This document shows, piece by piece, positions 30,239 through 54,528 of a stretch of DNA of 55,508 nucleotides; the stretch's first letter is position 1, and the number at the start of each line of letters is the position of its first letter. This DNA is from Octopus bimaculoides. Taxonomy: Eukaryota. The notes beneath the pieces were generated by a model, which saw only the letters and a list, made by a program, of their open reading frames with translations, made no database searches and had not been told where the DNA came from. Location: contig NC_068981.1 of the NCBI RefSeq assembly GCF_001194135.2, forward strand, positions 114,593,638 to 114,649,145, in the 5' to 3' direction. Both the position numbers and the translations under genes were made by a program.

Positions 30239-30305
30239 TTATTTGTCTTCAATCTTTGATTTACAGTTTGGGCAAACAAAGTCTGGATTCCTCTTGAGAC
30301 ATCTC
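30239..30305 (-). CDS. DEF8-like terminal exon: (R)RCLKRNPDFVCPNCKSKIEDK*
   Basis: Acceptor cacttcttccag, phase 2; final C...CPxC of the RH domain; TAA at 30241-30239; AATAAA on minus at 30228-30223 and 30125-30120. Confidence 0.92.
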
Positions 30306-31001
30306 CTGGAAGAAGTGCACATTAGAATTAATAGGTTGTGTATGGTTCTTTAGCATGTAATTATATTTGATATTCATTTAAAATTTCATCTTTATCCTCC
30401 TTTGAACTCTGTTATAGTACAATAACAATTTAGAGTATGAAGTTTAGACATTTTATGTAGTGACTCTGGGCATCTACCTCAGTTCTCCTGTCCCACAAAC
30501 ATATTTCACTCTCATAATATGGCTGTGGATATTTGCTCCAATAGTATTTAAATGACTGAATTGCAAAACTATACAATTCTACCTATGCTAGAATAGGAAA
30601 ATGGATGTGAAATACTCAGGAAATCATGAATTTTTATGCCAAAGAAATGAATTGACAAAGGAAAGAAAAATAGAAAATCAAGAACACAAAATATTTGTAT
30701 CCTGTCCTCATTAATAAACCCAAATAAAAACAACAAATAAATTTCATTACAAAAGTATTTCTTTTTACCTACAGAAACACTGAAATCTTGTAACTATGTA
30801 AGAAATTAATACATCTTATTTTGTAAGATTTCATAGTTATATTTCAGGATATTCATTTTTTTTTTTTTTTGCCAAATAAACACATGCACTATATAGTTGT
30901 TCTTCACTTCAGCTTTGGTATTATTCTTATTTTAGTGTGCTTTGTCTGAAATCTTTCATCACACATCCTGTGATCTCTTCAGCGTCTCTACATCCCATGA
31001 A

Positions 31002-31057
<56 letters not shown>

Positions 31058-31071
31058 TTAAATAATAATAA

Positions 31072-31312
31072 TATTAAAAAATACTCAGACAAATACATAA
31101 CAAAAATACCAGGACTTACAAATATATGTAACATACAGAAAATTGCACTACTGGGTACTGCACACATTCTACGCAAAACACTTTCAATACAGTAAACATA
31201 AAAGCACCACAGCAAACCACAGCACATACCCAAGGTGCACAGAGCTGCGCTCGGTAGTGAAGTGAAAGCACGTTATAAAAATAAAACTACTGAACAATAA
31301 TAATAATAATAA
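31072..31312 (+). mobile_element. R4/Dong-like LINE 3' end embedded in (AAT)n
   Basis: IQKIALLGTAHILRKTLSIQ* plus 3' UTR; (AAT)n on both sides. Confidence 0.8.
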
Positions 31313-31518
31313 TACAGCTGAAGTGAAGATCAAATATATAGTGCAAGTGTTTAATTGGCAAAATATGACCATCCCTAATCATAACAATATCTGTTTCAAC
31401 ACACAATTTCACACCAGGTCTCTTGCAAAACAAGTACATAAATGTAACAATATTTCATTCTCTTGCTAAAAGTAAGACAATTCTCTTCTTCCTCAAAATA
31501 AAAATGAAAACTGCTAAC

Positions 31519-31673
31519 CTATGAACACAAACTGGAAATGTACATTCTTCATTTGGACATTTAATGACACTATTTTCAAAAGGATAGAGAACATCTTCAA
31601 ATTCTTTATTTATTTCACTGTCTGGTGAAGCTGGGCAACAGATGGCACAACTGTAAGATTTACTAATACAAGT
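31519..31673 (-). CDS. DEF8-like exon: TCISKSYSCAICCPASPDSEINKEFEDVLYPFENSVIKCPNEECTFPVCVH(R)
   Basis: Acceptor ttcctgcatttcag, donor AG|GTTAGC, phase 0 to 2; matches the RH pattern C..KGF.C..C...D.LFPF....C..C...H. Confidence 0.93.
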
Positions 31674-32099
31674 CTGAAATGCAGGAATAAAATTTAATAT
31701 AGATTTAGATTATTATTCAATATTAGCATTTTTGAACAATCTGATCAGTTGATTAGATAAACAAACTTTTTTGTCAGTAAATAAAATGCTAAATGTATTT
31801 TAATAGTAAATAGTTACTAACGTTTCACAACTGCTGCCTGGATTCCATCTACATTCAAATAGAACCTTTGCACATACCTTCCAACTTCTCAACACTTGTG
31901 AATAAACTCATTTTTAAGATTCAATCAAAGCAGCCTTATAATGACTGACTCATTTCCCCTAAGTATTTTTTCCATTACTTAAACTTTCTAGCTTTTGATT
32001 GGAAAAATTCTCCTTGTCTTTGTTTCTATAATCATGGGAGATCCCTATTGGCTATAAGCAATATTCTTTTTTAGATACAACAACAATAAAGTGAACTTG

Positions 32100-32720
32100 G
32101 CCCATCAGGTCTGGAAATAACTAAGCAAAGAGTATTGCACCTTACTCCACTCCTAACAAGAATAGTATGCTCCAAGAACCCTCAGAATTGTTTCAAATGC
32201 TAGTCTTCACCACCACTGAGGGTTTACCCCTGACAAATTTTCAAACAAAGCAAACACTGCACCTAGAATTTAGAGCCAGTAAATATTTCAGTTCCCAACA
32301 ACTACTGAACTTGTACAATACCCAAATGAAGTACTGCTCTCACATTTGGCATGGTGTTGTTGCTACATACACAGAAGTCCTAGATCACATACAAAGGGAT
32401 ACTGTTAGACTGATTGACATGACCTCTTTCACTATTACACTTCAAATTCTATCCCCAAAATGTACTCTCTCTTTTATCATCATTTTCTATGTCTCTTCTT
32501 CAGAGATTGCTGCCACCTCCACTTAGGGACCCCCAGCTCACTTGTCTCTCCCAATCCCATCATTCTTATTTATTCCACCATGGTCCATACTAACCACTAC
32601 ATACAATCCTTTCTCCATAGACTATACCAGCTTTCTAAAATTGCCTCCAGTTTACATGTTTTCTTGTAGCTATCAACCTGCAACAGTTCAAGAGAACATT
32701 AATCAGTCCTACGAATCTCA
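32100..32720 (+). mobile_element. CR1/Jockey-like LINE C-terminal fragment
   Basis: LLNLYNTQMKYCSHIW...LDHIQRDTVRLI resembles the post-RT motif LYK.QIRP.LEYCSHIW...LD.VQRRAIRLI. Confidence 0.65.
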
Positions 32721-32807
32721 GGTGGCCTAAACAAAGCTCCTTCCTTCAGAATAAATAAAAAAAATATATTCTTCTTTTAACACTGTGATCCAGTTTTGAT
32801 TACTAAC

Positions 32808-32978
32808 CTTACAGTTATGGCGAACATGTTGAATTATCTTCTCATGTGACTCAATTACAATTGGGCAAAATAAGTCTTTAGATGGGTTTTCACAGTTGAA
32901 ACACTTATAAATATCTTCAAAATTCGAAAGAGAAAAATGGAGGGGTATCTCAAGTAAATTAGGCCAACAATTTTTGAT
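32808..32978 (-). CDS. DEF8-like exon: IKNCWPNLLEIPLHFSLSNFEDIYKCFNCENPSKDLFCPIVIESHEKIIQHVRHNCK
   Basis: Acceptor ttgttctttccag, donor AAG|GTTAGT, 171 nt phase 0 to 0; ends in the RH ...HV...C motif. Confidence 0.92.
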
Positions 32979-34336
32979 CTGGAAAGAACAAAAATAAAAT
33001 AAATAATTAAAAAAGGAAAGAAAACAATGATGATTGATACAAAGTCCTGTTGTTGAACAGAAGAGGTTCAATCATTTATACCAATATCAAAACATAATTG
33101 GATATGTACTTTATCCCAATATGGAGAGATGAAAAGCTGACCTCTTTCTGATTGAAACTAAAAGTATAAAATAATAGAAGGGCATTTTGTCCCATGCTTT
33201 ACCATATCTGTTACTTCACCTTTCTGTATTAGTTCGTATCTTCTCTTACTTGGATATCTGAATTGCTCTTAATCTCAAAACCCAACCTTTATTCCTGAAT
33301 TATTATCTCTGCATTCATTGAATTGTCCCATTAGTACCTAATAGAGGAACTGTCCTGTACAGTTCTCTGATACTTCTTCAGTTAATTCTCATAGCTCTTC
33401 TACTTTTATGCCAACCACCCTTAGTGGTGAGTATGTTTCACAACCAACCAATCTGAGGCAGCTAAACAGGTGATGGAAACTATACTCTAAGGCATGTCCT
33501 TTCACATCCCTCACATAGCAAAGGCTGATAACCACCCACTCTCCAGGTTACTTACCACAGCTGTGCTGCAGGATTATGGACTGTCAGTATGACTTCTATT
33601 GAGTTAGATTTATCTGCACCTTGCTTTCCTATGTCCTTCAGCTCTGGAGAACTTCTGTGAATGTAATAACCATTTCTAATCATCTCTCAAGTCTTGGATC
33701 AGAAGCTTCTGTCAGACCTCCCTATTATAACAGGTGCTGACAGTGCAATCTCCAGTTGACATTCCATCAAATCTGATGTACCTCTAAGTTCATTAATGTC
33801 ACTCACTTCTAACTACACATACTCCTACACTATATTACTTTACCATTCTTTAACTAGTAACAGACAAGTGAAATTCACACATCGACTAAATACTTCTACC
33901 AAGCATTGCTTATAAACCTTGAGAACATCCTTCAATGAAGATATGACAACTACATTTCACTCAACAACACGAGACATATCAAGAGAACACCTCATATTCT
34001 CAGCCTCAAAATTTCTACAGATATTAGGCCTCACAATCTCTGATGGCAAACCCACATATATAACATATATCAACTACATCACAGACACTAAGATTCTTCT
34101 TTAGTTGCTATCTCTCTGCAAAGCTTATACAAGACTCACATAAACTTCCTACACAAAATCAAAATCCTCTCAACCTTTGCTCACTGTTTTCTTCTTTGTA
34201 TACAATGTAGGGACAATGAAGTAATACTTACTGTCCACCAATGTGTCAACATATCAATCATGTCCAGTTTCTTTATATAGGGTTTACTTTATTAGTTATT
34301 TATTAATAAGGCTTTGTATTAGTCATATATACTAAC

Positions 34337-34414
34337 CTTGTATAATATTCTGTCAAAAGCTTTCTTGCACTCTGGAAGATTCTCATAGTATGATATAATC
34401 TCCAGTAATATTCT
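34337..34414 (-). CDS. DEF8-like exon: RILLEIISYYENLPECKKAFDRILYK
   Basis: Acceptor gctttttcag, donor AAG|GTTAGT, 78 nt phase 0 to 0; with the previous exon aligns without gaps to DEF8 [22 protein letters not shown] (from memory). Confidence 0.88.
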
Positions 34415-34943
34415 CTGAAAAAGCAATTTGAACATTTATAGAAAATTTCCTTTTTCAAACTGCTCAGTTGATATTGCACATCATTGGTAGAGAATAAATT
34501 GAGAAGAAAAAACATTTTGATTTATGAAATTATAAGTTGGACCAGGATTTCAAACTGCCTTGTTAAACACTTATCTCTTACAAAACAGAGCTTGGTATTT
34601 ACATTAACATAAAATAAATATTTAAGAGCTTGTAATGGAAACATGAATAAATGTTGAAGAAAAAAGATAAGCATTAAGTGATTCTGGAATTAAGTGATAT
34701 ATTTCTTCTTAACCAAAATTTTGTATTTATTAATTAAAAATAAAGATAAAGATATTTTGTATTATTATAAGCCAGAAATTTAGTCTTGTCTGGTATTTGT
34801 TGTCTTAACTATACAAAGATCAAAAGCAAAGTTAATCAGGTAGAATTTGAACTCAGAATATAGGGCAATGGAAGTGAAACAAAGTTTTGTGCATAAGGTT
34901 CCATGTGTTATAATTTGTAATTCTTGTTCACCAAGGGGAAAAC

Positions 34944-35006
34944 ATATGAAGGATTTTGAATGCATGTATCTCAGGACAAGTCTTGACCAATCACATACCT
35001 ACAAAT
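34944..35006 (-). pseudogene. Partial duplicate of exon 35728-35615 (acceptor + first 18 codons)
   Basis: 63 bp, 60/63 identical to 35674-35736. Confidence 0.9.
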
Positions 35007-35614
35007 TCTCTTAGCATGTCATTTTGTAGGGTGCAATCTTCTCCATGCTAATCCTTTTTTGGATTCATTTCAACAACTAAACAGTCTTCACAGCTTACAA
35101 TAGTATGTACACATCTGCACAGTGCTTAATTAAAGTTAAACTAAATTGTTATAAATAATCTTCTTCTACGACACAATGCTGCAATACATGAGACATTATA
35201 CAATTGAGTGACCTTTGGATAAGTAGGTTTGGGGTTGGCTGCAACGCTTCATATGAATGAAATACATTTGTACCCAACATGTATCCGTAAAACGATTTCT
35301 AAGATTTCGTACAGGAAGAAGTTTTAAGTTATTACATTTTGCACATCACTATAGCCTATATAGGTGATTCATGCCTAGAATACTGATGAAAGCCGAGGTC
35401 TGAACGCTGAGAAACATCCCAGAGGCCATATATTTGTATATTCAGGGATATTGACCTATCGGCTACCCTAAGTCAGCACAACCAAAGCTTATCAGAAATA
35501 CTCAATAACAATACTAATACATTAAAAAAAACTGAAAAACAAAAGTACTGAGAATAGGAAAAATTGAGGCTTAGATTTTGGATTTGCCAAAACTCTTTTG
35601 ACTTGTCTACTTAC

Positions 35615-35728
35615 TTCAATTGATATGAGTTCCCGGTGTAGTTGTATTACGAGTGAAGAAACTTCCTCCAGTGATATGAATGATTTCGAATGCATATATC
35701 TCAGGACAAGTCTTGACCAATCACATAC
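35615..35728 (-). CDS. DEF8-like exon: VCDWSRLVLRYMHSKSFISLEEVSSLVIQLHRELISIE
   Basis: Acceptor ctgttattatttgtag, donor GAA|GTAAGT, 114 nt phase 0 to 0; aligns with DEF8 [37 protein letters not shown] (from memory). Confidence 0.92.
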
Positions 35729-35809
35729 CTACAAATAATAACAGAGCTCCATGTTATAATTTGAAATTATATATTAATGTTCTATGGTAGACACATATAG
35801 AAGGTGGAA

Positions 35810-36030
35810 GGAGAAACTAACAAAACAACCTAACCAAAACACTACATACTCTCCGACAAGTAAAAGGCTCTCTAACCAGAAATCACCAGGCCCAGACAGA
35901 ATACAAGGTTATTGAATTGAAAATTTGAAGTCACTACATCAGAGAATGTAATAAATTCTTGATGAAAACTTTGACTCTAATTCTATCTCTATATCGTTAA
36001 CTAAAGGAATAACAGTGCTCAGAATGAAAA
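35810..36030 (+). mobile_element. R4/Dong-like LINE RT N-terminal fragment
   Basis: KRLSNQKSPGPDRIQGY*IENL...LTKGITVL resembles NWKAPGPDGVQGYWIK in the element at 51057. Confidence 0.6.
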
Positions 36031-37604
36031 GCAAAGCAAAAGGAAAAGATGCAATCACTTCTTCCGATAATGCGAAATCTACTGATCAGTACAATCACCG
36101 AAGAAATCAACCAACATTTGAATACTAACTACTTCCAGATGAAGAGAAAGGTCGATAATATATAAAAAAAAAGGACAAAAAAAAAAGACTGTCTGAAGGT
36201 TGAATGATCAGGTGGTAATATATAATGGAGACGATTTATGCGTTCAGCACCTCTGTTCCGTCATTCAGGGATAATTATCTCGGTTTCTGTGTATAGCCAC
36301 CATGATCATAACCTGGTTCCTGTTCCTACCAGTACGAAGGTCTGGTAGACACCGAGCAACTTACACAGCCCGCCGAACAAAGCTTTACAATGCTGGCCAG
36401 CGGCATAGTGTTTTCTGTATAAATTTTTGTTTCTTTCACTGTCTCGTTTTCATTCAGAACGCTACCGATTGCCTGTACTTCCGTAGTATCAAATACCATT
36501 TCACTGACCTGGGTTGCATATGCTGACACAACTCGTCCGCTGCCCAGTTCGCACAGAATAGCTCTCAAAGTTTCTAGTTTACACAATTGGAGCTCAGATG
36601 CCAGTTACATACAAAAGGAATGAGAGAGGACACTCTTGACGGACCAAGCGTATGAACAAAAACAGCTTTGATTGGTGGCTGTTTTGGTTGGCCACCAAGC
36701 AGTCCATTGTACAAGAGACCATTGTACATTGAAGTGATCCAGTATCCGTAAACGTGATCAAAAACAGCAGCCCCAAGGACAGCTTTCAAATAATACTCCT
36801 CAACCTTGTATAAAGCCTTCAACTGATCCTAATTTATTTGTGTCTTTCGAAAGCCAGGTTTGTTATCCACACTATATACTATGTATCGGATGAGGAGGAC
36901 GTTGTTGGAGATAGATTTTTCAGGGATCGCACGGTCTGCACTTTCGTGACAACACAAACGACAACAAACGCTAAGCTCTTTGACAGCACGTCTTATGAAG
37001 ACCTTAGCCAAGATTCAAAACCAAATCTAGATTTTTCTATGAGATTCATTCTATTGTTCTCGACTTTTGCACTAGGAAGTTTATGAGAATCGGCTGTTAA
37101 CCAGTAACCTTTCGAGTCAGTCTTAGGTTAGAGCAGATAAGAGACGGAAAATCCATTTTTTAGTCAGATTTGATTTAGTCAGAGAAAAATGTAAATATGG
37201 AGCCCAAACTTGGTTCTACCTCTTTCGCTTGGCCCCTGTCAAAAGGTGCACTTCACATATGATTTGTCAAAGCGAGACTATTCCACTTTTACTCACTCTA
37301 TTTGTCACGCCGAAGAGTAAATGCATTTGCTCTTTCTCTCTCCTTCTTCTATCCGTCCTCCTAACAAAAAATGAACTTAACCACCCACAGAATGGAACAG
37401 CAAATAATCTGTATATAACATTGTATCTTACATTCTAACGATGAAAATAAAGAGCCATTTCAACAATATTTTTCTTCTCACTTATTTGCTACATATCATC
37501 GTTACACACCCTGATCAAAAATTGCAAATTTGCCTTTAGCACAATTATGTTGACGCAAATTATCAATTGAGATCTTTTTCTTCGCATTTTTAACAGTGTT
37601 GCAG

Positions 37605-39355
37605 CTCCTCGGTTTATTTAACTCGGAATATCAAAAGAGGAATCTTTCGAGAGGACAGACTGTCGCCTGTTCTATTTGTTGTCTGCATACTGCCACTAAC
37701 GAGCGTTTTAAGAAAGATGCGTGTGGGGTACATGCTAGGCAGGGCGAAAGTAAACAACCTGTGGTTTATGGATGACCTAAAGCTATTCACTGAGACAAAG
37801 AAAGAAATTGAGAGTTTGACGGCAACTGTGCAGATGATTAGCAATGTTATTGGCATGGAATTTGGGATCGAGAAATGTGGTGTAATGATTCTCAAAAGGG
37901 GAAAAATCAATAAAAGCCATGGGATCAAGCTGGAAAGTGGTGAAACTATAAAGGAAGGTGGAGAGAGTGGATATAAGTTCTTGGCTATCATTGGAAGAGA
38001 TAAAATGAATGAACACACGATAAAAGAAATGTACAGGAAAGAGTATTTGAGGAGAACTCAGCTTGTACTCCAATCAAAGCTAAATGGCTGCTACAAGATT
38101 AGAGCAATTAACACGTGGGTGGTTGATGAGATATGGGGCAGGAATAGTATCTTGGAAGAAGCATGAATTACAAGTGAAAGACCGGAGAACACGTAAATTT
38201 AATGACAATGAACAAGGAACTATGCCCCAAGAGTGATGGGTCATGATTGTATATAAAGAGGGAAGAAGGAAGACAAGCATTGGTGTGTTGTGAAGGTTGT
38301 GTAAGGGAACAGGAGAATAGCCTGGCTTGGTATGTCAAGGGGAATAAAAAAGAAATGATTGAAACAGTGAAAATGCAGGGAACCTTAAAAGTGAACGAAA
38401 CCAGAAATCCAACACATTTTAAGAAAGGCCAGAGAAAGCAGATGGAGAAAATTTGGTAGGACTAGAAAATGCACAGTCAGTTTTTGAAGAATAAAGATGA
38501 GATTGATTGGAATAGAACCTGTAAATGGCTGAAGAAAGGGGACTTAAAAGGGCCCACTGAGGCATTAGTGTGCAGCGCTCAAGAACAAACTCTCAGAACA
38601 TCTCCAAATATCACATCTATAAAAACACTGACTCACCACAGTGCAGGATGTGCTTGAGAAGGGAGAAAGTATAAGCCATATTGTGAGTGAGTGCTGTAAG
38701 CTCACACAACGCGAATACAAGAGGAGACACGACAATGTGGCCAGATATGTCCACTGGCTATTGTGCGGTAAAGCAAACCTCGAGAGAGCCAAACAATGGT
38801 ATGGGCACAAGCCAGAGGGAGTAATGGAAAACAAATATTACAAAGTACTCTGAGATTTTAATATGCAGTGCGACCAAATCATAGAGGCGAGACGACCAGA
38901 TATCGTGCTCATCCTTAAAGATGGAAAAGAAGTAAAGATAAAAGATATTGCAATACCAGACGATTCGAGGGTGAAATGTAAGGAAACAGAAAAGATTGAG
39001 AAATACCAGCCACTGCAGGACGAGATAGGAAAGTTATAGGGCATAAGGAAAGTAATGGTGATACCGGTGGTAATTGTAGCATTAGGGGCAGTTTCCAAGG
39101 GCTTTGAAAAACATTAAGAATATTGGAGCTGATGTCAAGCTCGAGGTGATCCAGAAGACAGCATTGTTGGGTACAACTCGCATTCTGAGGAGAATATTGT
39201 CTCTTTGAGTCACAGGAGAAGGTATTACTTGAAACATTTGGTGATTTGTTATTGCTTGCTTTCAAGTAAAGAATAACCGTTAATTAAGAACTATCTGAGA
39301 GTCTTTCAGCATAACAATGATAATAGTAACAACAAAAACAACAATAATAATAATT
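37605..39355 (+). mobile_element. R4/Dong-clade non-LTR retrotransposon (RT-CCHC-RLE), 5'-truncated, antisense in intron
   Basis: IKRGIFRGDRLSP, LWFMDDLKLF, CRMC.EKGESISHIVSEC, RHDNVARYVHW, RRPDIVL...IKDIAIP, QKTALLGTTRILRR; (AAT/AAC)n tail. Confidence 0.93.
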
Positions 39356-39481
39356 TCTAGCACCGGCTCACAGCCCATTGGTGATAGGTATATACAATTA
39401 AGAGCGATCACAGTACTTAATCGCTAGTTTAGCTTTTGGAGCCTAAAAGAACAAAAGACTAAGCTGACCTCTGCAGAATTC

Positions 39482-39514
<33 letters not shown>

Positions 39515-39567
39515 TCTTAAAATATGAATCACTTGCAACTTGTGGGCTGCTCAGTGTGTTAATTTAC

Positions 39568-39692
39568 CGTATCAGGAGCGAAGTCCCAATGGAGAAGAAC
39601 CCTCTCTGGTAATATTTCTGAATGGTTGCTATGGCAATTAGTGCAATAAAATCTTTTGCTGAAGTGACAGAAACGACTTTCGCGTTCACAAC
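39568..39692 (-). CDS. DEF8-like exon: (G)CERESRFCHFSKRFYCTNCHSNHSEILPERVLLHWDFAPDT
   Basis: Acceptor ttttatttttcaacag, donor ACG|GTAAAT, phase 1 to 0; hallmark RH motif R.C......YC..CH.......P.R....WDF. Confidence 0.95.
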
Positions 39693-39824
39693 CTGTTGAA
39701 AAATAAAATAAAACAGAACTTAGGCATAGTAGTAGTAGTAATAGAGTGGTTGTACGGGAGCAATACTCTGTAACAGTGTATCGCTGCTTCCACCAATTAT
39801 TGGTAATTCCCGACTCCAGGTGGA

Positions 39825-40030
39825 TGACACCTTTATTTTTTATTGCACACAGGGGGCTAAAAATAAAGGGGACAAACAAGGACAGACAAAGGGATGAAGT
39901 CGATTATATCGATCCCCAGTGCGTAACTGGTACTTATTTAATTAACCCCGAGAGGATGAAAGGCAAAGTCGACCTCGGCGGAATTTAAACTCAGAACGTA
40001 ATACCGCTAAGCATTTTGCCCGGTGGTGCA
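39825..40030 (-). mobile_element. SINE of the same family as 17320-17520
   Basis: Reverse complement of gaggtcgactttgcctttcatcctctcggggttaattaaataagtaccag; matching 3' end also seen at 40646-40700 on +. Confidence 0.8.
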
Positions 40031-40759
40031 CCACTCAGGCAACAACCCTTCAATCCATGGGTTTCTTTTGAGTAATCGTTTCTGGTGAGCGTTTTATGGT
40101 GTCGGAGTGCAAATCCTACCTCAATCTCTTTTAGTCACCTTTTACGACAGGCAGAAAAAACGTTGGGTCCAAGCATAATTTTGCTTAGACAAAAAGGAAA
40201 TGGGAAAATGTGACACGACGAACATTAATACACTTTTTCCTCTCCTATAAACNNNNNNNNNNNNNNNNNNNNNNNNNNNNNNNNNNNNNNNNNNNNNNNN
40301 NNNNNNNNNNNNNNNNNNNNNNNNNNNNNNNNNNNNNNNNNNNNNNNNNNNNNNNNNNNNNNNNNNNNNNNNNNNNNNNNNNNNNNNNNNNNNNNNNNNN
40401 NNNNNNNNNNNNNNNNNNNNNNNNNNNNNNNNNNNNNNNNNNNNNNNNNNNNNNNNNNNNNNNNNNNNNNNNNNNNNNNNNNNNNNNNNNNNNNNNNNNN
40501 NNNNNNNNNNNNNNNNNNNNNNNNNNNNNNNNNNNNNNNNNNNNNNNNNNNNNNNNNNNNNNNNNNNNNNNNNNNNNNNNNNNNNNNNNNNNNNNNNNNN
40601 NNNNNNNNNNNNNNNNNNNNNNNNNNNNNNNNNNNNNNNNNNNNNTCTCTTTGTTTGTCCCCTTTATGTTTAGCCCCTTGTGGGCAATAAAGAAATATAT
40701 ATAAAAGTATGCATGTATGTATGTATGTATGTGTGCATGCATGCGTGTAAAATATAAAT

Positions 40760-40902
40760 AGGCGTAAGCTGTGTGGTTAAGAAGTACGAAGTATGCTTGC
40801 TTTCCAACTACTTGGTTTAGGCTCAGTCCCTCTGAAATATTTTCTAGTACAGCCAAAGGTCCACCAGCGCTTCATGAACGGACTTGGTACAAAAGAAGCC
40901 TG

Positions 40903-40945
<43 letters not shown>

Positions 40946-41085
40946 NNNNNNNNNNCACCGTCATATAAGCGATGCTTGTCGTTTCCAGTCTTCTGTCCAG
41001 CCATAGAAAAATATTACCTTGCTTGAAACTGGTGAGGTTTGGCGACAGGGAGAGCATGTCCCCCACTCCGGCCACAGCTTTTTAA
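40760..41085 (+). mobile_element. Degenerate tRNA-derived SINE
   Basis: ggcgtaagctgtgtggttaagaag head, ggctcagtccc B-box-like, gaaactggtgaggtttggcgacaggg tail. Confidence 0.55.
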
Positions 41086-41419
41086 TACATTGTTAAAAAT
41101 ATTTCAGAGAACTCCAAGATATAGACGTGGATGTATTAAAAGAACCACTTAAATAAGATATCAAATGAATCCATATCATGGCAAGAAAAGCAAATGAAGG
41201 CGATATTTTATGAGACCGTCATTCACCAAAACCACGGAGAAAGGGCCGTGGATATGAACTGAAATAAACTAATAATCACACCAATGACTGTTTCCCAGCA
41301 ATAGTACCAATATATATAACATATATATATACCAGTATATATAACATTCGTAAGGTATATTACAAGCATGGAAACCAGATCTGATATTTTTCACAGAGAA
41401 AGTTCTCAAAAACACATGT

Positions 41420-41530: not shown

Positions 41531-41787
41531 CCAAAAGAAAAAAAAAGCTCGTTCCGATATTGAAATCAGTAAACAATACATTTATTGATTTGCGCAAAAG
41601 CTAGCCAGGCTATAATTAAATAAACATATGTACTTAAATTAAAATAAACATATGGCTTAAATTAAAATACAGGTGTAGATTAAAATGCTGTACTCGGGTC
41701 AGTATGATCAACAAAAACCTTGAAAACGTTTCCCTCCGTGGCTCTGGCTAACAGCTGAAATCAACAAATGAATAAAAGGGTACTAAC

Positions 41788-41878
41788 CATAAAGATCACT
41801 ATCACATCCGTAACAAAAGAATTTTTGTGTCATCACTGTAGAATGTCCTTCGTGAAGAAAAGCAATTCCCAGAGAAAG
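41788..41878 (-). CDS. DEF8-like exon: LSLGIAFLHEGHSTVMTQKFFCYGCDSDLY(G)
   Basis: (CT)n tract + tttag acceptor, donor TATG|GTTAGT, phase 0 to 1; Q.F.C..C start of the RH domain (DEF8 QDYRCAEC). Confidence 0.92.
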
Positions 41879-42159: not shown

Positions 42160-43383
42160 CATCGGGGATAATAATAATATTATTATTACAGTGCATAGAA
42201 AATAAACAACTTCATCGAGTTATATGTATGTACAGCTTGTTTGTAGATTTCGAGTCCATTCCTTATGATAGTAGTTAGTTTGATCTCTTTGACTATTAGA
42301 GAGAGAAAGAGTAAGAGCGACAACACTGACAGAAACGATAAGGGATTTACCTTCATACATTTATCAACATATTAGTAGATATGCTCTTGGTTGACACCGA
42401 ATTACCAAAGAAGTCAACTGATATTTTTATTGTGCATTTATATTCATGCTAAATAAGTTAGATCAAGCTAAAACAATGGATTTCTCTTCTGTAATCAATT
42501 TTGACCAATGAATGCCATGAAAAGGTCCAAGAGGTCAACTTATTCGCATTAATCGCTTTGTGCAGAAAGGCTAAGACAATGGGCCGAGGACTTGTGTGGC
42601 AATGTGTAAAAATGTGAATTCAGTTTTGAAATCTAGCCTATACATGTACAGCAAGGAATAAGAGATGTGTGTGTGTGTGTGTGCGTGTGTGTGTGTGTAT
42701 GTGTATGCGTGCGAGTGTGTGGGCATGTGTGTGTGTTCTTATATCTATCTATCTATCTACCTGTCTATCTCTCTAGTTATCTGTATGTATGTATGCATTT
42801 ATGTATATCCCCATATATATATATATATATATAAACATATATATATATATANNNNNNNNNNNNNNNNNNNNNNNNNNNNNNNNNNNNNNNNNNNNNNNNN
42901 NNNNNNNNNNNNNNNNNNNNNNNNNNNNNNNNNNNNNNNNNNNNNNNNNNNNNNNNNNNNNNNNNNNNNNNNNNNNNNNNNNNNNNNNNNNNNNNNNNNN
43001 NNNNNNNNNNNNNNNNNNNNNNNNNNNNNNNNNNNNNNNNNNNNNNNNNNNNNNNNNNNNNNNNNNNNNNNNNNNNNNNNNNNNNNNNNNNNNNNNNNNN
43101 NNNNNNNNNNNNNNNNNNNNNNNNNNNNNNNNNNNNNNNNNNNNNNNNNNNNNNNNNNNNNNNNNNNNNNNNNNNNNNNNNNNNNNNNNNNNNNNNNNNN
43201 NNNNNNNNNNNNNNNNNTGTATGTGTGTGTTTGTGTGTATTTTTTCAATGTGTACAAATAACACGGAAAAAAATAAATAATTACCAGGGTAGCAAAAATT
43301 AACATAAGTGCCAAGGATATTACAGCTTGCTTATAAAGGTAGAAATTCCAAGGTTAGGCGAAATGATTTTGTATAACAGATAA

Positions 43384-44757: not shown

Positions 44758-44958
44758 TATCTATCTGTCTGTCTGTCTGTCTGTCACATATATATATATA
44801 AAAGACAATACTTAATGAAAGGGAATTGAATGTAAATGCTTCTTCTGTCAGGAAAATGTACTGTTAGTTTTTTCACTATCATACTACCGACACGACCAGT
44901 AACGGTTCCAATAAATTACTCGATAATACTTTATAGATGGCAAATTGTTATAACTTAC

Positions 44959-45023
44959 GTATGTTGAAGGGCATTCAAAATTGTAGAAGTGTTTACAATC
45001 ACTGTGTACTTTTATTCCACATT
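44959..45023 (-). CDS. DEF8-like exon, second half of C1B: (E)CGIKVHSDCKHFYNFECPSTY
   Basis: Very strong poly-Y acceptor (ttttctttttgcag), donor TAC|GTAAGT, 65 nt phase 1 to 0; C-x4-H-x2-C-x7-C. Confidence 0.95.
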
Positions 45024-45799
45024 CTGCAAAAAGAAAAAAAGAAAAGAAAAGAAAATAAATAAAATTATCTTACTGGAATTTTGGGGGCTGAAGAAAATGG
45101 AATGGTGCAACTTTACTATTCTCAAGAGAATAAACGGAGCATGTAAATGGAAGCACATACATAATTAAACGGAAATTAAAATCGTAATTAAAGAGCTGTA
45201 AAGTACAGTTAAAAATATATTTTACGTATAGAACTCTGAGGAATAGAGTGCAGAGGTACATTTATTATGTAATTAGTGATAGTTTGTTCAAAGTTTCGCG
45301 ACGTACTGGGCTATTCACAATTGTGGGGAAGAATATATTTTTGGCAGTTTATATGAGGGTGGATTGATTTTGGAAGCGTGTTTATGTATGTGTATGAATA
45401 AGGTGCTATGTGTCTTTGCAAATAAATTTTAAGGCGAGGAGATTGTAATGAAAAGTTATTGTCAGGGTGTGTGTAATTATGAATGCGTGGTGACAGTTCT
45501 TAATTCTATTCATGATTGGGACGCTTTTTATATCGATTTGAATAGCAAGACTTAATTGACACTGTTAGAATAGGGGCGTGAGGTTACGTGCCGTTCATTA
45601 CCATTCTACTAAAGCTTGGGACGGGTTTCAGTGCAGAATCTAAATAAACTCTTATGGTTGACATCTTGGGAACCGATCTGTTAAACAACACTTCCTAAAG
45701 ATTTTAAGAAATCAAAGACATTGAGGTAAAAATTACACACAAACATACAAATGAGAAATCAACAGCACAAATGAATAGTCGTAAAGAAAATACTTTAAC

Positions 45800-45926
45800 C
45801 TTTACACTTGTAGGCAGGAGTAAGGAAAATATCCAGGTTAAAATGACATTTCTCACACTGTGTCCAAAATTTTTTGTAGGTTAATACAAATTTATGTCCT
45901 TGTATTTCATTACAAAAGTTATCTTT
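45800..45926 (-). CDS. DEF8-like exon, first half of C1B: KDNFCNEIQGHKFVLTYKKFWTQCEKCHFNLDIFLTPAYKCK(G)
   Basis: Acceptor cgttttggtttcag, donor AAAG|GTTAAA, phase 0 to 1; H-x12-C-x2-C-x13-C. Confidence 0.93.
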
Positions 45927-47733: not shown

Positions 47734-47798
47734 CTGCACAGTTTTGCAAGTAAGCTTCATATTCCCAATACAATGTGGGTGGCAGATAAAGTTGCAAA
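47734..47798 (-). CDS. DEF8-like exon, second half of C1A: (V)CNFICHPHCIGNMKLTCKTVQ
   Basis: Acceptor atgtcgtttcag, donor CAG|GTAATA, 65 nt phase 1 to 0; C-x4-H-x2-C-x7-C; not in the ORF track in this frame. Confidence 0.9.
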
Positions 47799-47838
47799 CT
47801 GAAACGACATTTAAGATTAAAACTAAGAGTAATTAAGA

Positions 47839-47892
<54 letters not shown>

Positions 47893-48392
47893 GCCTTGAT
47901 GCAGTACCAGGCACTGACTCTCATAACCTTTGATTTTAACTGATTGGAAGTGCTATCATATACATGTTTTGTTTTGGTATGAAAGATGAGCTACAGCAAA
48001 TATTCAGCTCAATACCACAGATTTGCTTGGTGCTTGCTTGACCTTAACCAGTTGAGCATGTCCCTTAGTGGCTGACGATATGTGCATCTCTGATCACGAG
48101 CAGAAGTAGTGGGCGGGGGGCATCATAGCCATGTGTTGAGAGCAATTCTTTGGAGTTTGAATAATTCACCTCTGGTATTTCGTTCACCATCTTTAAACAA
48201 CCTTTATTCAGGAGCCTTTTGAATGGGATGAGATACTCAACCCGAAGAAAATTCTATCTGGGTCTCATCTGTAAGGTCATGTGCTGTGCATGAAGTAACC
48301 TTATCAGACTGGTAGTTATGATGGGTATATTGGGCTTCATATACTTTACCCCAGTGTCACTTTGATGGTAAGCATTGCTCTCTCACTCAATA
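47893..48392. mobile_element. ~500-bp interspersed repeat (SINE-like, microsatellite-associated), copy 1
   Basis: Reverse complement of 54645-55185; short fragment also at 53290-53352; preceded by (AAT)n. Confidence 0.8.
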
Positions 48393-48695
48393 AACAACTA
48401 TGACGATTTGAAGTGGGAAATACGAAGGTTGTGATCAATGAGGAGAGTAGACGTGATACCAATAGTAATTGGCGCACTTTTAAGTATCAGCACTCAACTT
48501 CCAACATGGCTTAAAAAGAGTGGTGCAAGTGTGAAAGTAGAACACCTACAAAAACCAGCATTGCTTGGAACTGCAAGAATTCTTCGCAGGGTTCTTGAAG
48601 CAAGACCAGTAAACAAATGTCTGCTGGCTGTGGACAGCTGACACTTTCCATCATACCCAGCAAAATAAGCTGTGAGGTTTCATATAATGATAATA
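48393..48695 (+). mobile_element. R4/Dong-like LINE 3' fragment
   Basis: YDDLKWEIRRL...VDVIPIVIGAL...HLQKPALLGTARILRRVLE. Confidence 0.85.
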
Positions 48696-48890
48696 CTCTT
48701 TTACTTGTTTCAGTCATTTGACTGCGGCCATGCTGGAGCACCANNNNNNNNNNATCCACTCACAAGTCTTTGGTCGGCCTGAGGCTATAGTAGAAGACAC
48801 TTGCCCAAGGTGCCACGCAGTGGGAATGAACCTGAAACCATGTGGCTGGTAAGCAAGCTACTTACCACACAGCCACTCCCACACCTATAA
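48696..48890 (-). mobile_element. tRNA-derived SINE (gap inside)
   Basis: Reverse complement of ggagtggctgtgtggtaagtagcttgc...ggttcattcccactgcgtggcaccttgggcaag. Confidence 0.85.
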
Positions 48891-48919
48891 TAATAATAAT
48901 AATACTAGTAATAATAATA

Positions 48920-49141
48920 ATAATAAAGCATTTTCAATACAGTAACCATAAGAGCATCACAACAAACCACAGCACATACCCAAAGCACACAGAGCTGCGC
49001 TCGGTAGTGAAGTGAAAGCACGNNNNNNNNNNAGAGCATCACAACAAACCACAGCACATACCCAAAGCACACAGAGCTGCGCTCGGTAGTGAAGTGAAAG
49101 CACGTTATAAAAATAAAACTACTGAATAATAATAATAATAA
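48920..49141 (+). mobile_element. R4/Dong-like 3' UTR fragment in (AAT)n
   Basis: Same sequence as 31190-31312; the internal duplication across the 10-N gap is likely an assembly artefact. Confidence 0.75.
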
Positions 49142-49142
49142 A

Positions 49143-50590
49143 ATTTGTGATGGATGGTCCTCCTGATACAGGAGGACTTCTAGGGATGATCGAGAAACCC
49201 CGCCAACCAAGATCGCCCTAAATACCATGGACAAATACCTTTTCCAACTCCTTTCCTCCGACTCACAGGTCTACACTGAGAGTGGTACCATCCACTCTTG
49301 CCATACTCGCAGCTTTCACCCACCTTTTCATAAATTCACTCGAGGACAGCGCCTCCCTCTCCACCCTCACTTTCCTTTTCGAGTGAAACTTGAAAGTCGA
49401 TGAGGGCTTTACCAAAGACGAATGTCTCTGTCCTCATTCCTTTCAGCCTCATCCACCAAACAACCTCTTTTGGCACAGCAACAAGGCAAAGGAAAACTGC
49501 TTTGCCTGCCCGATTAAAGTAGGGCAGCAGGGCAATCATCACTATTCACGCGGGTGACAGACGGATCCGTCCCACACCCTTCAGCAGCTGTTCGGCATAA
49601 TTCCCACAAGTCAACAATAACCGAACACTCAACGAGTGTATGCATAATGGTTTCCTCGCCTTGTGGGCACCTCGGACAAGGCCATCTGACAGAATATCCG
49701 TACCTGTAGAGTTTATCTTGAACCGGTAGCACCCTGCGGTAGCACTGCCAAGCCAAAGACATATGGGGATTATCCATAATAGTCCCCGATCGAAAAGTCC
49801 TCCGGAACAGACTAGTCAGTTCATCTTTGTCAACGCCCACAGTCTCCCTTAGGATATCGTCGCACTTTCCCGCCACTAATCCTCTATAAATAGCTAAAGT
49901 GGAACATCCACCGATCCTGTTGCCCGACTGGTAGAGGACAGTGAACGCCTGACGATATTCTAAGTGCCAGGCACCCAGTCTTGGTCTATCCTTCACCCAG
50001 AACTGCTACTCGTCAAAGAGACGAGTTGCGGAAATACGTGTCTCACAAATGGAGCCCACACGCATTCACCTTTTATAAAGCATTGCAGGTGGTGCAACCG
50101 GAGCGCATATCTACGCATCAAAATCCACAGCATGCCTAAGCCAACACTCAGAGGGAGCTGACAGCAGATTGACCACCTGACCATTGGAACGCGTCCCTTC
50201 TACAAGAACATGAACAAGAGACGCTCCAACTTGATCAAGCAATAATGGGGTAAGGCACGACGGTTAGACGATAAATGGATGCGGAGGCGATGTAGGCATC
50301 TGCCACCTCTGCTCGACCTTTCAGGGACAGTTTCTTCTCAGCCCATTTCTGGGTAAGACTGGTCACCCACTTCATCACCTCGTCCCAGTTCTTATTCACC
50401 TGGAGGTCAGGACCAAACTAAACCCCGAGCAGTTTAACTGGTCCGTCAGTCCAGTATCCGACGACGCCAGCTGACAGTATTGACCTGCCTCCACAGATGC
50501 TCAGTCGCAAGCCCACCGATATCTCAGCATTGATTTTAGCCCCTGCAACCGATTCATATTCTTCAAGAATGGAGCCAACTATCTCCACTT
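49143..50590 (-). mobile_element. Tx1/L1-clade LINE, 3' portion
   Basis: YESVAGAKIN, VKLLGV.FG, W....LSLKGRAEV; zf-RVT CPRCPQGEETIMHTLVEC; GC-richer than the flanks. Confidence 0.85.
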
Positions 50591-53280
50591 CTGGTGGAAA
50601 AGAAGAATACAGACAGGGTTAGATATGCTCTCGAATGACATTTCTGTGTTAGATCGAAAAGAGAAAGGGGAGCTTAAAAGCGAACAGGGTGCTGAATACA
50701 GGGTGCTGAAAAGGAAGTGTAATACTGAAAGTGGTAATGGAGGAACTGAAACAACGCCTCGTTGCAAAGAAAGCAAAGATGGTAAGATACGACTAAAGAA
50801 TGAAGGGTTACCAGTAGAATAGGTTATTCAGAGTAGATCAGAAGGGATTCTATAAAGAAATAAATGGAGAGTGTACAGATGAAAAGTTGATACCAGATAA
50901 CATTGAAAGTCAAGGGTTTTGAAGTGACATCTGGAGCAAAGACAAAGAGCACAAGAAGGATGCTGAATGGTTGCAAGAACTGAAACAAACAGTAGTCTGT
51001 CCAAAACAGGCAGAACTAGTCATTTCAGTTAGGGAAGTGAAGGAAATTAGCAAAAAATGAGCAACTGGAAGGCCCCGGGCCCAGATGGAGTTCAAGGCTA
51101 CTGGATCAAAAGATTTGGTGAATGTCATACACGAATAGCTGTGCAACTCAACACCTTGTTAAATTCCGACCAAGTAGCACCAGAGTGGTTGACATTGGGT
51201 GAGACAGTGCTGTGCCTGAAAAACATCAGAAAAGGCAATACGGTAGACAATTGCAGGCTGATATCCTGTTTGCCACATATGCGGAAGTTAGTGACTGGAA
51301 CACTCGCAAAGTCAATGTACGAACATCTGGAAAAAAAATGGAGTTCTGTAACATGAGCAGAAGGGTTGCAAGTGTAAGTGCAGAGGTACCAAGGATCAAC
51401 TCCTGATAGACAAAAGTGTACTTAGAGACTGCAAGAGGAAGAAAACTAATTTAGCCACGTCATGGATCGACTATCGTAAGGCGTACGAAATGATCCCACA
51501 TTCTTGGATTATGGAATGTGAACCTATTTGGTATTGCATCGAATGTTGAGCGATTGCTTGGAAAAAGTATGGCGAATTGGAGGACAGACATGACAGCATA
51601 AGGAAGAAGTTTAGGGACTGTAGAAATCAGGAGGGGCATCTTCCAAGGGGACTGCCTGTCCCCACTGATCTTTGCACTGTGCATGATACCACTAACACTG
51701 ATTCTGAAGAAAATAAAAGCTGGGTTTGTATTCAAGAGCTGCAAATAAAAAGTCAACCATTTGTTATTCATGGATGACCTCAAACTTTATGGTAAAGATG
51801 AATCCCAAGTCAGTTCCTTCGTCGATACGTTGTATACTTTCAGTGCTGATATCAGAATAGAGTTCGGACTGAGAAAGTGTGATGTGTTAGTCTTGAAGAG
51901 AGGCAAAATAAAATGTATGGACGGGCTAACGATACCGTCGGGTGAGTTTATGAAGCAGATAGAAGAGACGGGTTATAAGTACACGGCGATTTTGGAAATG
52001 GATAAATTAATGGAGAAAGAAATGATAGAAAAATTTAAGGTGGAGTACTTGCGCAGACTGAGACTGATCCTTAAGTCAAAATTAAACGGATGGAATTAGA
52101 TAGTAGCTATCAACACCTGGGTGGTTTCACTCCTTAGATATGGAGCAGAGGTAATCGCACGAACAATAGATGAACTAAACAGTTTAGACAGAAAGACAAG
52201 GAAGTTGCTGAGTAGATATGGGACACTCCACCCAAAAAGTGACACAGACAGACTGTATGTACCAAGAAAAAGAGGGGGAAGAGGACTGATTAGAGGTGAA
52301 CACAGCATTAGAGCAGAAGAAAACAACATAGCATAGTATGTAAAAAATGCTATTATTGGAAGTAAGGTCAGGCTTGTGTAGGATGAAAATTGCTAAGATA
52401 AAGCACTGTACAAGCACTTGAGAATGAATGAAACTGAAAATAGGTGGGTAAAGAAAAGAATGCATGGACAATTTCATAGGGATGTTGAAGATACTACAGA
52501 CAGAGAAAAGAGATGGCTATGGATGACTAAAAGAGATTTAAAACCGGAAACAGAGGCTCTAATCTGTGCTGCCCAAGAGCAAGTATTAAGAACAAATTAC
52601 ATAAAATACAGAATAGACAACACATCAGAAAGTGATAAGTGCAGAATTTGTGGACAAAATGGTGAATCCGTATGGCATATTACCAGCCAATGTACGCCAC
52701 TAGGTGAGAAGGAATATAAGAGACGTCACGACAATATAGCAGGGCTTGTCCATTGGACACTTTGCAACATGTATGGACTTGATAGAGCAAAAAATTGGTA
52801 CGACCACAAACCCGAAGTATCATCGAAAATGATAATTCAAAGATCCTATGGGATTTTATGATTCAGTGCGACCATGAGATAAAGAATAGGATTCCATATA
52901 TAGTATTAATTGAGAAAGAAAGTAAATTATGCTGGATCATAGAAATAGCATGCCCAGCTGATAACAATGTATGCAATAGGGAAGAAAGAAAAGTCGATAG
53001 ATATGACAGGTTAGCTTGGAAGGTTTAGCAGTTGTGGTCGATGAAAAAGGTGGTAGTCGTACCAATAATTGTCGGAGCCCTAGGAACAATGAGGGTGGAG
53101 CACTTGCAGAAAACAGCACTGCTTGGAACCGCTCGAATACTCCGGAAGGCGCTCGAAAAATAAGAGGTGTTACCTTAGTTCACTGGTAGTGAACAGCTGA
53201 AACCGTAGTACATCTCTAGCGTTAGAAGCTGTGCAAAGGCTATAATAGTAACAACAACAACAACAACAACAACAATAAAA
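50591..53280 (+). mobile_element. R4/Dong-clade non-LTR retrotransposon, 5'-truncated, antisense in intron
   Basis: [95 protein letters not shown]...IEIACP, QKTALLGTARILRK; (AAC)n tail. Confidence 0.95.
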
Positions 53281-53409
53281 ATAATAATTGTCCTAATGCA
53301 GCACCAGGCACTGACTCTCATGGCTTCTGATCTTAACTGACTGGAAGTGTTAATTCTTTCTACTGTAGGCACAAGGCCTGAAATTTTTGGGGAAAGAAGT
53401 ATAAATAAT

Positions 53410-53785
53410 AGATGTTGCAATACCAGACAATTCAAGGGTGAGATGTAAGGAAACAAAAAGATTGAGAAATACCAGCCACTGCAGGACGAGATAGGAAAGT
53501 TGTGGGGCATAAGGAAAGTAATGGTGATACCAGTGGTAACTGGAGCATTAGTAGCAGTTTTGAAGGGTTTTGAAAAAACATATTAAGAATATTGGAGCTG
53601 ATGTCAGGCTCGAGGTGATCCAGAAGACATCATTGTTGGGTACAGTTCACATTCTAAGAAGAGTATTGTCTCTTTGAGTCACAGGAGAAGGTATTACTTG
53701 AAACCTTTGGTGATTTGTTGTTGCCTGCTTTCAAGTAAAGAATAACTGGTAATTTCGAACTATCCAAGAGTCTTTCAGAAAAATA
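53410..53785 (+). mobile_element. R4/Dong-like 3' fragment, same family as 38940-39340
   Basis: Near-identical to the 3' end of the 37605-39355 element (EKYQPLQDEIGKLWG...QKTSLLGTVHILRR). Confidence 0.9.
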
Positions 53786-53812
53786 ATAATAATAATAATA
53801 ATATTAATAATG

Positions 53813-53895
<83 letters not shown>

Positions 53896-53938
53896 AAGAA
53901 GAAGAAGAAGAAGAAGAAGAAGAAGAAGAAGGAGAAGA
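53783..53938. repeat. (AAT)n followed by (AAG)n microsatellite
   Basis: Directly visible. Confidence 0.97.
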
Positions 53939-54371
53939 TTAATGGGGTTTTTATAGAGAAAGCGATGACATCGAGGAAAGTAGAAATGAAGTGAGGAAAT
54001 GATACTTTAGGGAATATAAAACAAGTACATAACTGAAGTTAAAAGACAAAAAAAAAAAAATCAACGCGAGTAAAATGGCGACAGAAGAAAAGAAAAATGT
54101 AGAAACAAAGCTAAAAATATTAGAAACTGCCATATTAAAATGATGATATGAAAATCTTGTACATGATCAATACCTGAAGAAAGTGAACAGAGTGAAAGTA
54201 GACAAGAACAATTATGAATTCTATGATTTGTGAAGAATGATGGACAAGTATGATAATTGTATCTTCGTAAAGAACATTAGAGACATATATGAAATACACC
54301 TAAATAAGACATGACACTATTTAACTCTACTCCTAGAAATAAAACATTACAAAATATAAAAAGAGGCTTGC

Positions 54372-54528
54372 CTTTGCAAACGTAACACAAATGGTAGTAT
54401 CTTCCGACGTAACCTGCGCAACACCAGCATCTTCTTGTGTGAAACTGCTTCTTAACCAAAACCAGTTTATGACCTTCATAGCAGATTTCCTTAACAAGCT
54501 TTTCTTTTCTATCAACATCTGGAAATCC
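54372..54528 (-). CDS. DEF8-like exon, first half of C1A: GFPDVDRKEKLVKEICYEGHKLVLVKKQFHTRRCWCCAGYVGRYYHLCYVCK(G)
   Basis: H-x13-C-x2-C-x13-C-K; donor AAAG|GCAAGC (GC-AG) at the same codon position and phase as the C1B exon; completes a full C1 only when joined to 47798-47734; acceptor ttttcag is short, so the exact 5' edge is less certain. Confidence 0.85.

Follow-up and report, generated by a model that had tools for sequence, protein, structure and literature searches.

The window analysed here, 55,508 nucleotides of the Octopus bimaculoides genome (NCBI RefSeq assembly GCF_001194135.2, contig NC_068981.1, positions 114,593,638 to 114,649,145 of the forward strand), carries on its minus strand a gene whose product joins two tandem C1 domains, C1A and C1B, to a complete Rubicon-homology (RH) domain. 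By sequence the gene appears to be a lineage-restricted paralogue of DEF8 that arose at the DNA level and holds an array of C1 domains, and this evolutionary account is well supported. The multi-C1 RH layout is real, rare and undescribed in searchable papers, yet it already stands in databases as an automatic prediction. The fuller explanation favoured here, in which duplication of the gene and of its C1 cassette gave rise to a membrane adaptor with an altered Rab7 interface, is given a probability of roughly 0.7.

RH-domain proteins (Rubicon, Pacer, PLEKHM1 and DEF8) form a small family that acts through Rab7 to control the traffic of late endosomes, lysosomes and autophagosomes. Here the RH scaffold has been kept in nature while the C1 domain has multiplied and most mapped Rab7-contact positions differ, which offers a ready test of the residues that set RH partner specificity and a handle on the role of the poorly understood C1 of DEF8. 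The paralogue is also a clean case of domain gain via tandem duplication of a symmetric two-exon cassette, and with it the octopus list of lineage-restricted gene innovations grows by one. No general principle is altered by the finding, and the protein is already databased under an automatic name.

Gene structure and the C1 domains

The exons were placed with an O. sinensis RefSeq protein as guide (P0001, 'differentially expressed in FDCP 8 homolog B-like isoform X1', 483 amino acids, with Pfam RH_dom and C1_1), and their boundaries were set by splice sites. Eleven minus-strand exons in the window make up 1215 nucleotides, that is 404 codons and a TAA stop, joined in frame. Exon 1 (54372..54528), which is coding exon 4 of the gene as a whole, supplies residues 1-52 plus one nucleotide and with them the first half of C1A, from H20 to C51-K52; exon 2 (47734..47798, 65 nucleotides) carries the second half, V53-C54 to C70, and the start of the linker. 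The remaining linker and the first half of C1B (H85 to C115-K116) lie in exon 3 (45800..45926, 127 nucleotides), and the second half of C1B (E117-C118 to C134) in exon 4 (44959..45023, 65 nucleotides).

After a further linker the RH domain starts in exon 5 (41788..41878) with the first C-x2-C of zinc cluster 1, and exon 6 (39568..39692) continues that cluster (CHF...YCTNCH) and includes the conserved LPERVLLHWDF motif. The helical stalk is encoded by exons 7 (35615..35728), 8 (34337..34414) and 9 (32808..32978), with E263, the position aligned with Rubicon T825, in exon 8 and a clade-specific insertion of about nine amino acids (YKCFNCENP) in exon 9. Exon 10 (31519..31673) holds zinc clusters 2-4, the residues T, S, K and Y that align with Rubicon L883, A886, K887 and F889, and the clade-specific insertion PASPDSEINK. 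Exon 11 (30239..30305) ends the protein: it supplies the final zinc ligands (RRC...CPNC), and after them come the short tail KSKIEDK, which is not basic, and the TAA stop. The model is colinear with O. sinensis XP_036365480, the 404 residues differ from the O. sinensis protein by 15 substitutions and no indels, and the residues of exon 1 match residues 80-131 of P0001 colinearly.

A preliminary description of this DNA had reported 11 exons with proper splice sites joining to 404 residues, together with the C1 spacings, a 14-residue linker and a CPNC end. Its frame and length stand, as do 10 AG acceptors out of 10 and nine GT donors; the remaining donor, that of exon 1 (AAAG/GCAAGC, the slash marking the exon end; window 54371-54370), is GC. 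This GC donor has a good GC-donor context and is also present in O. sinensis (L002 23779-23780). On rereading the sequence, the spacings, the linker and the CPNC end proved to be exactly as claimed.

Exon 1 opens at an acceptor, and the protein must therefore extend upstream of the window product. The 404 residues are identical to the last 404 of UniProt A0A0L8GT81 (P0176, O. bimaculoides, 476 amino acids), and the missing N-terminal 72 amino acids are encoded by three exons located 5.4-9.3 kb past the window end (L005 3001-3030, 4528-4654 and 6882-6940; CM046601.1). The full gene has 14 coding exons, of which the window contains coding exons 4-14. The first off-window exon encodes MGCASSRNVA and the next two encode a third C1 (HHFYKQEVCWNRLCSLCDQ...KWCAPHFKSFC), with only 21 amino acids preceding the first C1 of the full protein. 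The complete architecture is C1-C1-C1-RH, and the window holds the second and third C1. The original picture of a two-C1 plus RH gene is accurate for the window, where both C1s precede a full RH domain, and needs amending for the gene, since the full 476-residue protein has three C1s and the 404-residue product is 5'-truncated. The gene is cut off at the window end because position 55508 adjoins a 1076-N gap in the chromosome-level O. bimaculoides assembly (L005 11250-12325).

C1A comprises residues 20-70 (47746..54471, minus strand) and is split by a 6.6-kb phase-1 intron between K52 and V53, inside its second C-x2-C. It reads H20-x13-C34-x2-C37-x13-C51-x2-C54-x4-H59-x2-C62-x7-C70, and the peptide quoted for it in the preliminary description maps to minus strand 54477-54373 plus 47799-47746. 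The linker occupies the 14 residues 71-84. C1B (residues 85-134; 44971..45896, minus strand) reads H85-x12-C98-x2-C101-x13-C115-x2-C118-x4-H123-x2-C126-x7-C134 and is the counterpart of the single C1 in conventional DEF8, with a phase-1 intron at the identical position. Both domains fit H-x12/13-C-x2-C-x13/14-C-x2-C-x4-H-x2-C-x7-C.

Pfam recognises these modules to different degrees. Against the gathering threshold of 26.5 bits for C1_1 (PF00130), C1B alone passes with 31.2 bits, the upstream C1 scores 24.7 and C1A 12.6 (E 0.12); the RH_dom score is 98.1. Despite its low score C1A keeps its ligands and is modelled with a C1 fold. None of its eight zinc ligands varies among relatives with only 27-31% identity across the C1A segment, and an AlphaFold model of C1A alone, built from an alignment of four sequences, reaches a predicted local distance difference test score (pLDDT) of 74.6. 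The top 22 Foldseek matches of this model are exclusively C1 domains, among them those of ROCK2, protein kinase C (PKC) delta and theta, GEF-H1, MgcRacGAP, Munc13 and Raf, at template-modelling (TM) scores of 0.42-0.64 normalised on the query (all but three of them 0.5-0.64). On the invariant ligands and the C1A-only model, C1A is a genuine, divergent C1.

The ligand groove of a typical C1 has a consensus of Pro11, Gly23, Gln27 and hydrophobic residues at 20-24 in PKC delta C1B numbering. C1B aligned to PKC delta C1B has W, D, I and P in place of Pro11, Trp22, Gly23 and Gln27, and C1A, read directly, has no Pro, Gly or Gln at the corresponding places. As this diacylglycerol and phorbol groove consensus is missing, the C1 domains are classed as atypical. 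Typical and atypical C1 domains have been distinguished previously, with the atypical ones tending toward protein contacts (PMC2427238).

The preliminary description had likened the linker to that of conventional PKCs. The product does resemble conventional and novel PKCs in having two tandem C1 folds joined by a short linker of 14 residues, and the C1A-C1B linker of PKC alpha has about 15 amino acids. Unlike these kinases it has no kinase domain and no C2, and neither of its C1s carries the phorbol/diacylglycerol consensus. The likeness is structural only, and in linker length no more than a resemblance: as the intron position common to the C1 modules shows, the tandem C1s arose by duplication inside a DEF8-type gene and were not inherited from PKC.

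Descent from DEF8 and origin of the C1 array

An exhaustive HMMER scan of 1.84 billion representative proteins with P0001 as query gave 479 matches at E <= 0.001, and architecture was inspected in the best 150 of these and in fetched cluster members, making 179 proteins. Only one match runs full length over C1A, C1B and RH, namely P0003 (545 amino acids), which comes from a Logan assembly of SRR27666059 and scores 231 bits at 34% identity. When P0003 was used as query in turn, P0170/P0179 (SRR8281693), 54% identical to P0003, were found as well, and P0003 and P0170 are each a single open reading frame (ORF) on an mRNA-sized contig. The remaining matches to P0001 score no higher than 88 bits and align from C1B onward only.

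At least two C1 domains before an RH domain were found in the paralogue clade alone among the 179 proteins, and a regular-expression count and a count with a custom C1 hidden Markov model agree on this. Outside Octopus the C1-C1-RH layout occurs only in P0003 and P0170 among the best 150 of the 479 matches and their cluster members. Two- or three-C1 DEF8 proteins are not widespread: in the collection searched they come from Octopus species and two transcriptomes only. A literature search for DEF8 together with octopus returned nothing relevant, and no paper naming these proteins was found. The suggestion that the architecture is new to the family is borne out to that extent; the gene itself is already present as automatic predictions in RefSeq (XP_014778342.1) and UniProt (A0A0L8GT81), so that novelty is confined to the description of its architecture.

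Outside the clade of the paralogue the named relatives all belong to DEF8, whether from annelids, a gastropod, a nemertean, a sea cucumber, amphioxus or a priapulid, and the conventional Octopus DEF8 is among them. The top named matches after the clade come from Paralvinella, Bulinus, Lineus, Octopus, Holothuria and Branchiostoma at 20-26% identity, which agrees with the initial assignment as DEF8-like at roughly 25%. The expectation that the gene is a paralogue was also confirmed: octopus has a second, conventional single-C1 DEF8 of 579 amino acids (XP_014789610 in O. bimaculoides; XP_029640714). In O. sinensis the paralogue and the conventional DEF8 share a chromosome, at 72.8 and 177.8 Mb, and at a distance of about 105 Mb a tandem gene duplication with conventional DEF8 was rejected.

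DEF8 has been described as a protein of C1_DEF8 plus RH architecture that influences where lysosomes are positioned and makes the PLEKHM1-RAB7A complex more stable (PMC10564863). The paralogue resembles it in the order of a C1, about 40 amino acids and then a full RH domain, and its nine exon boundaries from C1 to stop and the phase-1 intron of the C1 are identical to those of octopus DEF8. Apart from the low identity of 20-26%, it differs in having one (window) or two (full gene) additional C1s and in lacking the N-terminal region of about 270 amino acids with its conserved EDHF...EEL..AI..CK...LV.KL..LR block. It has instead an MGC start, and it also has three clade-specific RH insertions, replacements at Rab7-contact positions and a non-basic C-terminus. 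The gene departs from DEF8 in three characteristic features, having more than one C1, no conserved N-terminal region and replacements among the conserved Rab7-contact residues, and the name that suits it best is DEF8-like paralogue with a C1 array. PLEKHM1 and PLEKHM3, which combine RUN and/or PH domains with one C1 and an RH domain, belong to the same Rab7-linked endolysosomal family (PMC2993745; PMC7382272). They too have a C1 immediately ahead of RH, but the paralogue has no RUN or PH domain and DEF8 proteins score higher. Judged by homology, the gene descends from DEF8 and would be expected to work like it.

The exon structure points to how the C1 array was made. Conventional octopus DEF8 has nine exons from its C1 to the stop, with boundaries at the same alignment positions as window exons 3-11. 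Its C1 is interrupted within the second C-x2-C by a phase-1 intron (TGT CAA G/gt...ag/AA TGT, slashes marking the exon ends), as are C1B, C1A and the upstream C1. Each C1 is a two-exon cassette with phase 0 at both ends; the second-half exons of C1A and C1B have 65 nucleotides each, and the first-half exon of the upstream C1 appears from a reading of its boundaries to be 127 nucleotides, equal to that of C1B. Symmetric two-exon cassettes with an identical phase-1 intron imply a gene duplication at the DNA level followed by tandem cassette duplication. C1B is the closest of the C1s to the DEF8 C1 and stands in its position, and it is there that the HMMER alignments to conventional DEF8 begin. 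The C1 copies are 20-36% identical to each other and to the DEF8 C1, with the zinc ligands alone contributing 16%. A neighbour-joining (NJ) tree of the C1B-RH region recovers the clade as monophyletic, on a long branch.

On this evidence the ancestral DEF8 gene was duplicated, introns included. One of the resulting genes then underwent tandem duplication of its two-exon, phase 0-0 C1 cassette, giving two C1s in the transcriptome relatives and three in Octopus, and in it the long N-terminal region of conventional DEF8 was lost and a short MGC... start took its place. Purifying selection maintains the paralogue.

Between O. bimaculoides and O. sinensis the coding sequence has 21 synonymous and 15 non-synonymous differences, a ratio of non-synonymous to synonymous rates (dN/dS) of 0.16. 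All 10 splice-site pairs (nine GT-AG and one GC-AG) and the intact frame are conserved between them, the amino acids of the C1A core are 100% identical and exon 2 is identical at 65 of 65 nucleotides. Given the dN/dS, the unchanged C1A core and the single-ORF, mRNA-sized contigs of the two relatives, this is no pseudogene, and the exons that encode C1A are no decoys. The strong divergence from DEF8 and the narrow distribution of the clade might otherwise be taken for signs of a decaying duplicate, an incipient pseudogene whose odd architecture has no function. Such decay is hardly credible in view of the conserved frame and splice sites, the dN/dS, the expression of the relatives, and an O. 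vulgaris model, partial in extent, that is 99% identical to the O. sinensis protein.

A separate question is whether C1A belongs to the protein at all. Exons 1 and 2 might be pseudo-exons or parts of another transcript, with the product starting downstream as in the predicted O. sinensis isoform X4 (MKLTCK). The GC donor of exon 1 would suit this alternative, as would the 6.6-kb intron rich in retroelement pieces, the RefSeq isoforms X3 and X4 with their downstream starts, an O. bimaculoides model with a cassette inside C1A, and the failure of Pfam to recognise C1A. It is nonetheless very improbable: besides the identity of the C1A core and of exon 2 in two Octopus species, the GC donor itself is conserved in O. 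sinensis, two distant relatives carry C1A-C1B-RH in one ORF on mRNA-sized contigs with 8/8 ligands, and the C1A model folds as a C1.

The cassette just mentioned encodes 34 amino acids (EVEIVGS...LSICG; 102 nucleotides, window 50590-50489, minus strand) in the intron after exon 1, and in RefSeq XP_014778342.1 (510 amino acids) it is inserted between the two halves of C1A. It adjoins reverse-transcriptase pieces of the long interspersed nuclear element (LINE) type (49514-49996), may itself be retroelement-derived, and also requires a GC donor. It is absent from all four O. sinensis isoforms; probably it reflects an error of the gene model or else a minor isoform in which C1A is broken.

RH domain, Rab7 interface and proposed function

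The RH domain is complete and ends in CPNC. The Pfam profile RH_dom (PF13901) scores well above its cut-off of 28.1 bits and covers residues 175-399 at profile positions 1-203 of 206, and in a phmmer search of PDB sequences residues 153-398 match the Rubicon RH domain (6WCW) at 7e-8. Among 38 aligned sequences the Cys/His columns of the four zinc clusters are invariant or nearly so, and they align with the Rubicon ligands. An AlphaFold2 model of the 404 residues, made with the same 38-sequence alignment, has a mean pLDDT of 83.8 and a predicted TM score of 0.72. Its top Foldseek match is 6wcw_A (E 2.7e-11, 255 columns, TM 0.66 on the target), and the next is full-length PKC beta, over 117-122 columns that span two C1 domains. 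In zinc-ligand pattern and in its L-shaped fold the domain is thus like that of Rubicon, which has four zinc clusters and binds Rab7-GTP. It differs from Rubicon in its 24% identity, in the absence of a RUN domain and a PI3K-binding region, and in having KSKIEDK and a stop where Rubicon has the basic helix alpha13 (R931/R934/R938/R939; PMC7382272).

The Rubicon RH domain binds Rab7-GTP via zinc clusters 2-4, the end of the helical stalk and the basic C-terminal helix, and the mutations T825D, L883D, K887D and F889D as well as the quadruple R931/934/938/939D reduce Rab7 colocalisation (PMC7382272). The contact positions considered here are those validated by experiment in Rubicon, six of which were aligned with the paralogue at 24% identity. 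At Rubicon T825, L883, A886, K887, F889 and R931, Octopus has E, T, S, K, Y and N. T825 is acidic throughout the clade (E in Octopus, E in P0003 and D in P0170), like the disruptive T825D mutant. In the same order of proteins, L883 becomes T, K and E; K887 is K, H and Q; F889 is Y, Q and Q; and R931 is N, G and G. Five of the six positions are altered somewhere in the clade, whose members have three RH insertions in common, and the Octopus C-terminus, KSKIEDK, contains no arginine-rich helix. Conventional DEF8s of six phyla, in contrast, largely keep L883, K or R at 887, F or Y at 889, R or K at 931 and an arginine-rich tail, although position 825 is usually S and one of them has T at 883. With five of six contact positions replaced and the basic C-terminal helix lost, Rab7 binding is expected to be weakened or the partner changed.

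It is possible, if not the favoured outcome, that the gene is an ordinary DEF8 duplicate whose RH domain still binds Rab7-GTP and which acts in DEF8-like lysosome positioning or fusion, perhaps in another tissue, as in subfunctionalisation by expression. Such a role would be in keeping with the complete RH domain and its zinc ligands, with the K887 and aromatic residue at 889 retained in Octopus, and with purifying selection of a similar strength on both genes (the two Octopus species are 95.4% identical in the paralogue and 96.9% in conventional DEF8). The changed contact positions, including the acidic residue at T825, and the missing arginine-rich helix speak against it, the more so as conventional DEF8s of six phyla largely keep these residues, and the conserved DEF8 N-terminal region is absent as well.

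The favoured explanation of an adaptor with an altered Rab7 interface includes a mechanism that, unlike the evolutionary account, we infer. The protein would most likely serve endolysosomal or secretory membranes as a zinc-rich adaptor. Its MGCASS start fits the consensus for Gly2 myristoylation and Cys3 palmitoylation, as a motif match only. This putative acyl anchor and the array of atypical, non-diacylglycerol C1 domains could together give avidity for membrane or protein partners, and the RH domain might dock a small GTPase or an RH partner. Rab7 binding may have been weakened or the partner switched, which would amount to sub- or neofunctionalisation and not to redundancy with DEF8. A stronger proposal is that the clade constitutes a distinct, undescribed RH subclass of lipid-anchored multi-C1 'DEF8-like' adaptors, with RH domains that recognise another GTPase or partner, made by exon-cassette duplication in the cephalopod (or a slightly wider) lineage; this can be offered only tentatively and is on balance doubtful. 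The MGGKNS start of P0003 likewise fits the myristoylation consensus.

Several points weigh against the favoured explanation. For neither of the exact full-length octopus proteins, P0176 of O. bimaculoides and P0172, is a transcript contig on record. C1A is under the Pfam C1_1 threshold and has a pLDDT of just 56-77 in the full model, and true use of the 34-residue cassette of XP_014778342.1 would disrupt C1A in the isoform concerned. As for the acylation motif, it matches a consensus and no more, lies off the window and is missing from O. sinensis isoform X1. The interface argument depends on the Rubicon alignment at 24% identity, contacts between DEF8 and Rab7 are not known to have been mapped directly, and the Octopus paralogue does keep K887 and an aromatic residue at 889. 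C1 copies that are only 20-36% identical do not allow ancestor to be told from descendant, and the NJ tree, in which the long branch takes the midpoint root, carries no information on the date of the duplication.

Assembly, repeats and other features of the window

The chromosome-level O. bimaculoides assembly (GCA_001194135.2, CM046601.1) matches the window at 100% identity and has the same N runs. Its assembly gaps fall in the intron after exon 1 (48744-48753 and 49023-49032), the intron after exon 4 (42852-43217) and the intron after exon 5 (40253-40645 and 40946-40955). No coding exon is hidden in these gaps, since the O. sinensis locus (L002) contains no N and its protein is indel-free against the 404 residues. 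Long homopolymer and trinucleotide runs (poly-T/A, TAA/TTA) and (CA/TG)n tracts lie beside several of the gaps (53740-54000, 47830-47920, 39480-39530 and others) and are typical of the assembly.

Directly upstream of the exon 1 acceptor is an (AAT/AAC)n microsatellite (54531-54640, minus strand) that is in frame with exon 1 as poly-Asn. The poly-Asn read-through lies within the ORF 54771-54277, and an ORF caller would wrongly lengthen exon 1 there. Farther along the gene, the acceptor of exon 7 and its first 55 nucleotides are present a second time as a 63-bp copy (60/63 identical; 35006-34944 against 35736-35674, minus strand), about 730 bp downstream in the next intron, with an O. sinensis counterpart at L002 40255-40344. 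This partial copy could be a decoy acceptor or a relic of exon duplication, and no obvious in-frame donor was seen for it.

When the ORF translations of window positions 1-30000 were read by eye, no other host gene was seen. Transposable-element fragments, identified by reading ORF translations alone, are scattered on both strands, at 3191-3562 (plus), 4956-5923 (minus), 16184-16666 (plus), 27403-28954 (plus), 37717-38166 (plus), 49514-49996 (minus) and 52418-52861 (plus). They include one mariner-type transposase piece (…HDNAQPHVS…SPDLSPTDYHFF) and several LINE-type reverse-transcriptase pieces, three of which lie within introns of the gene.

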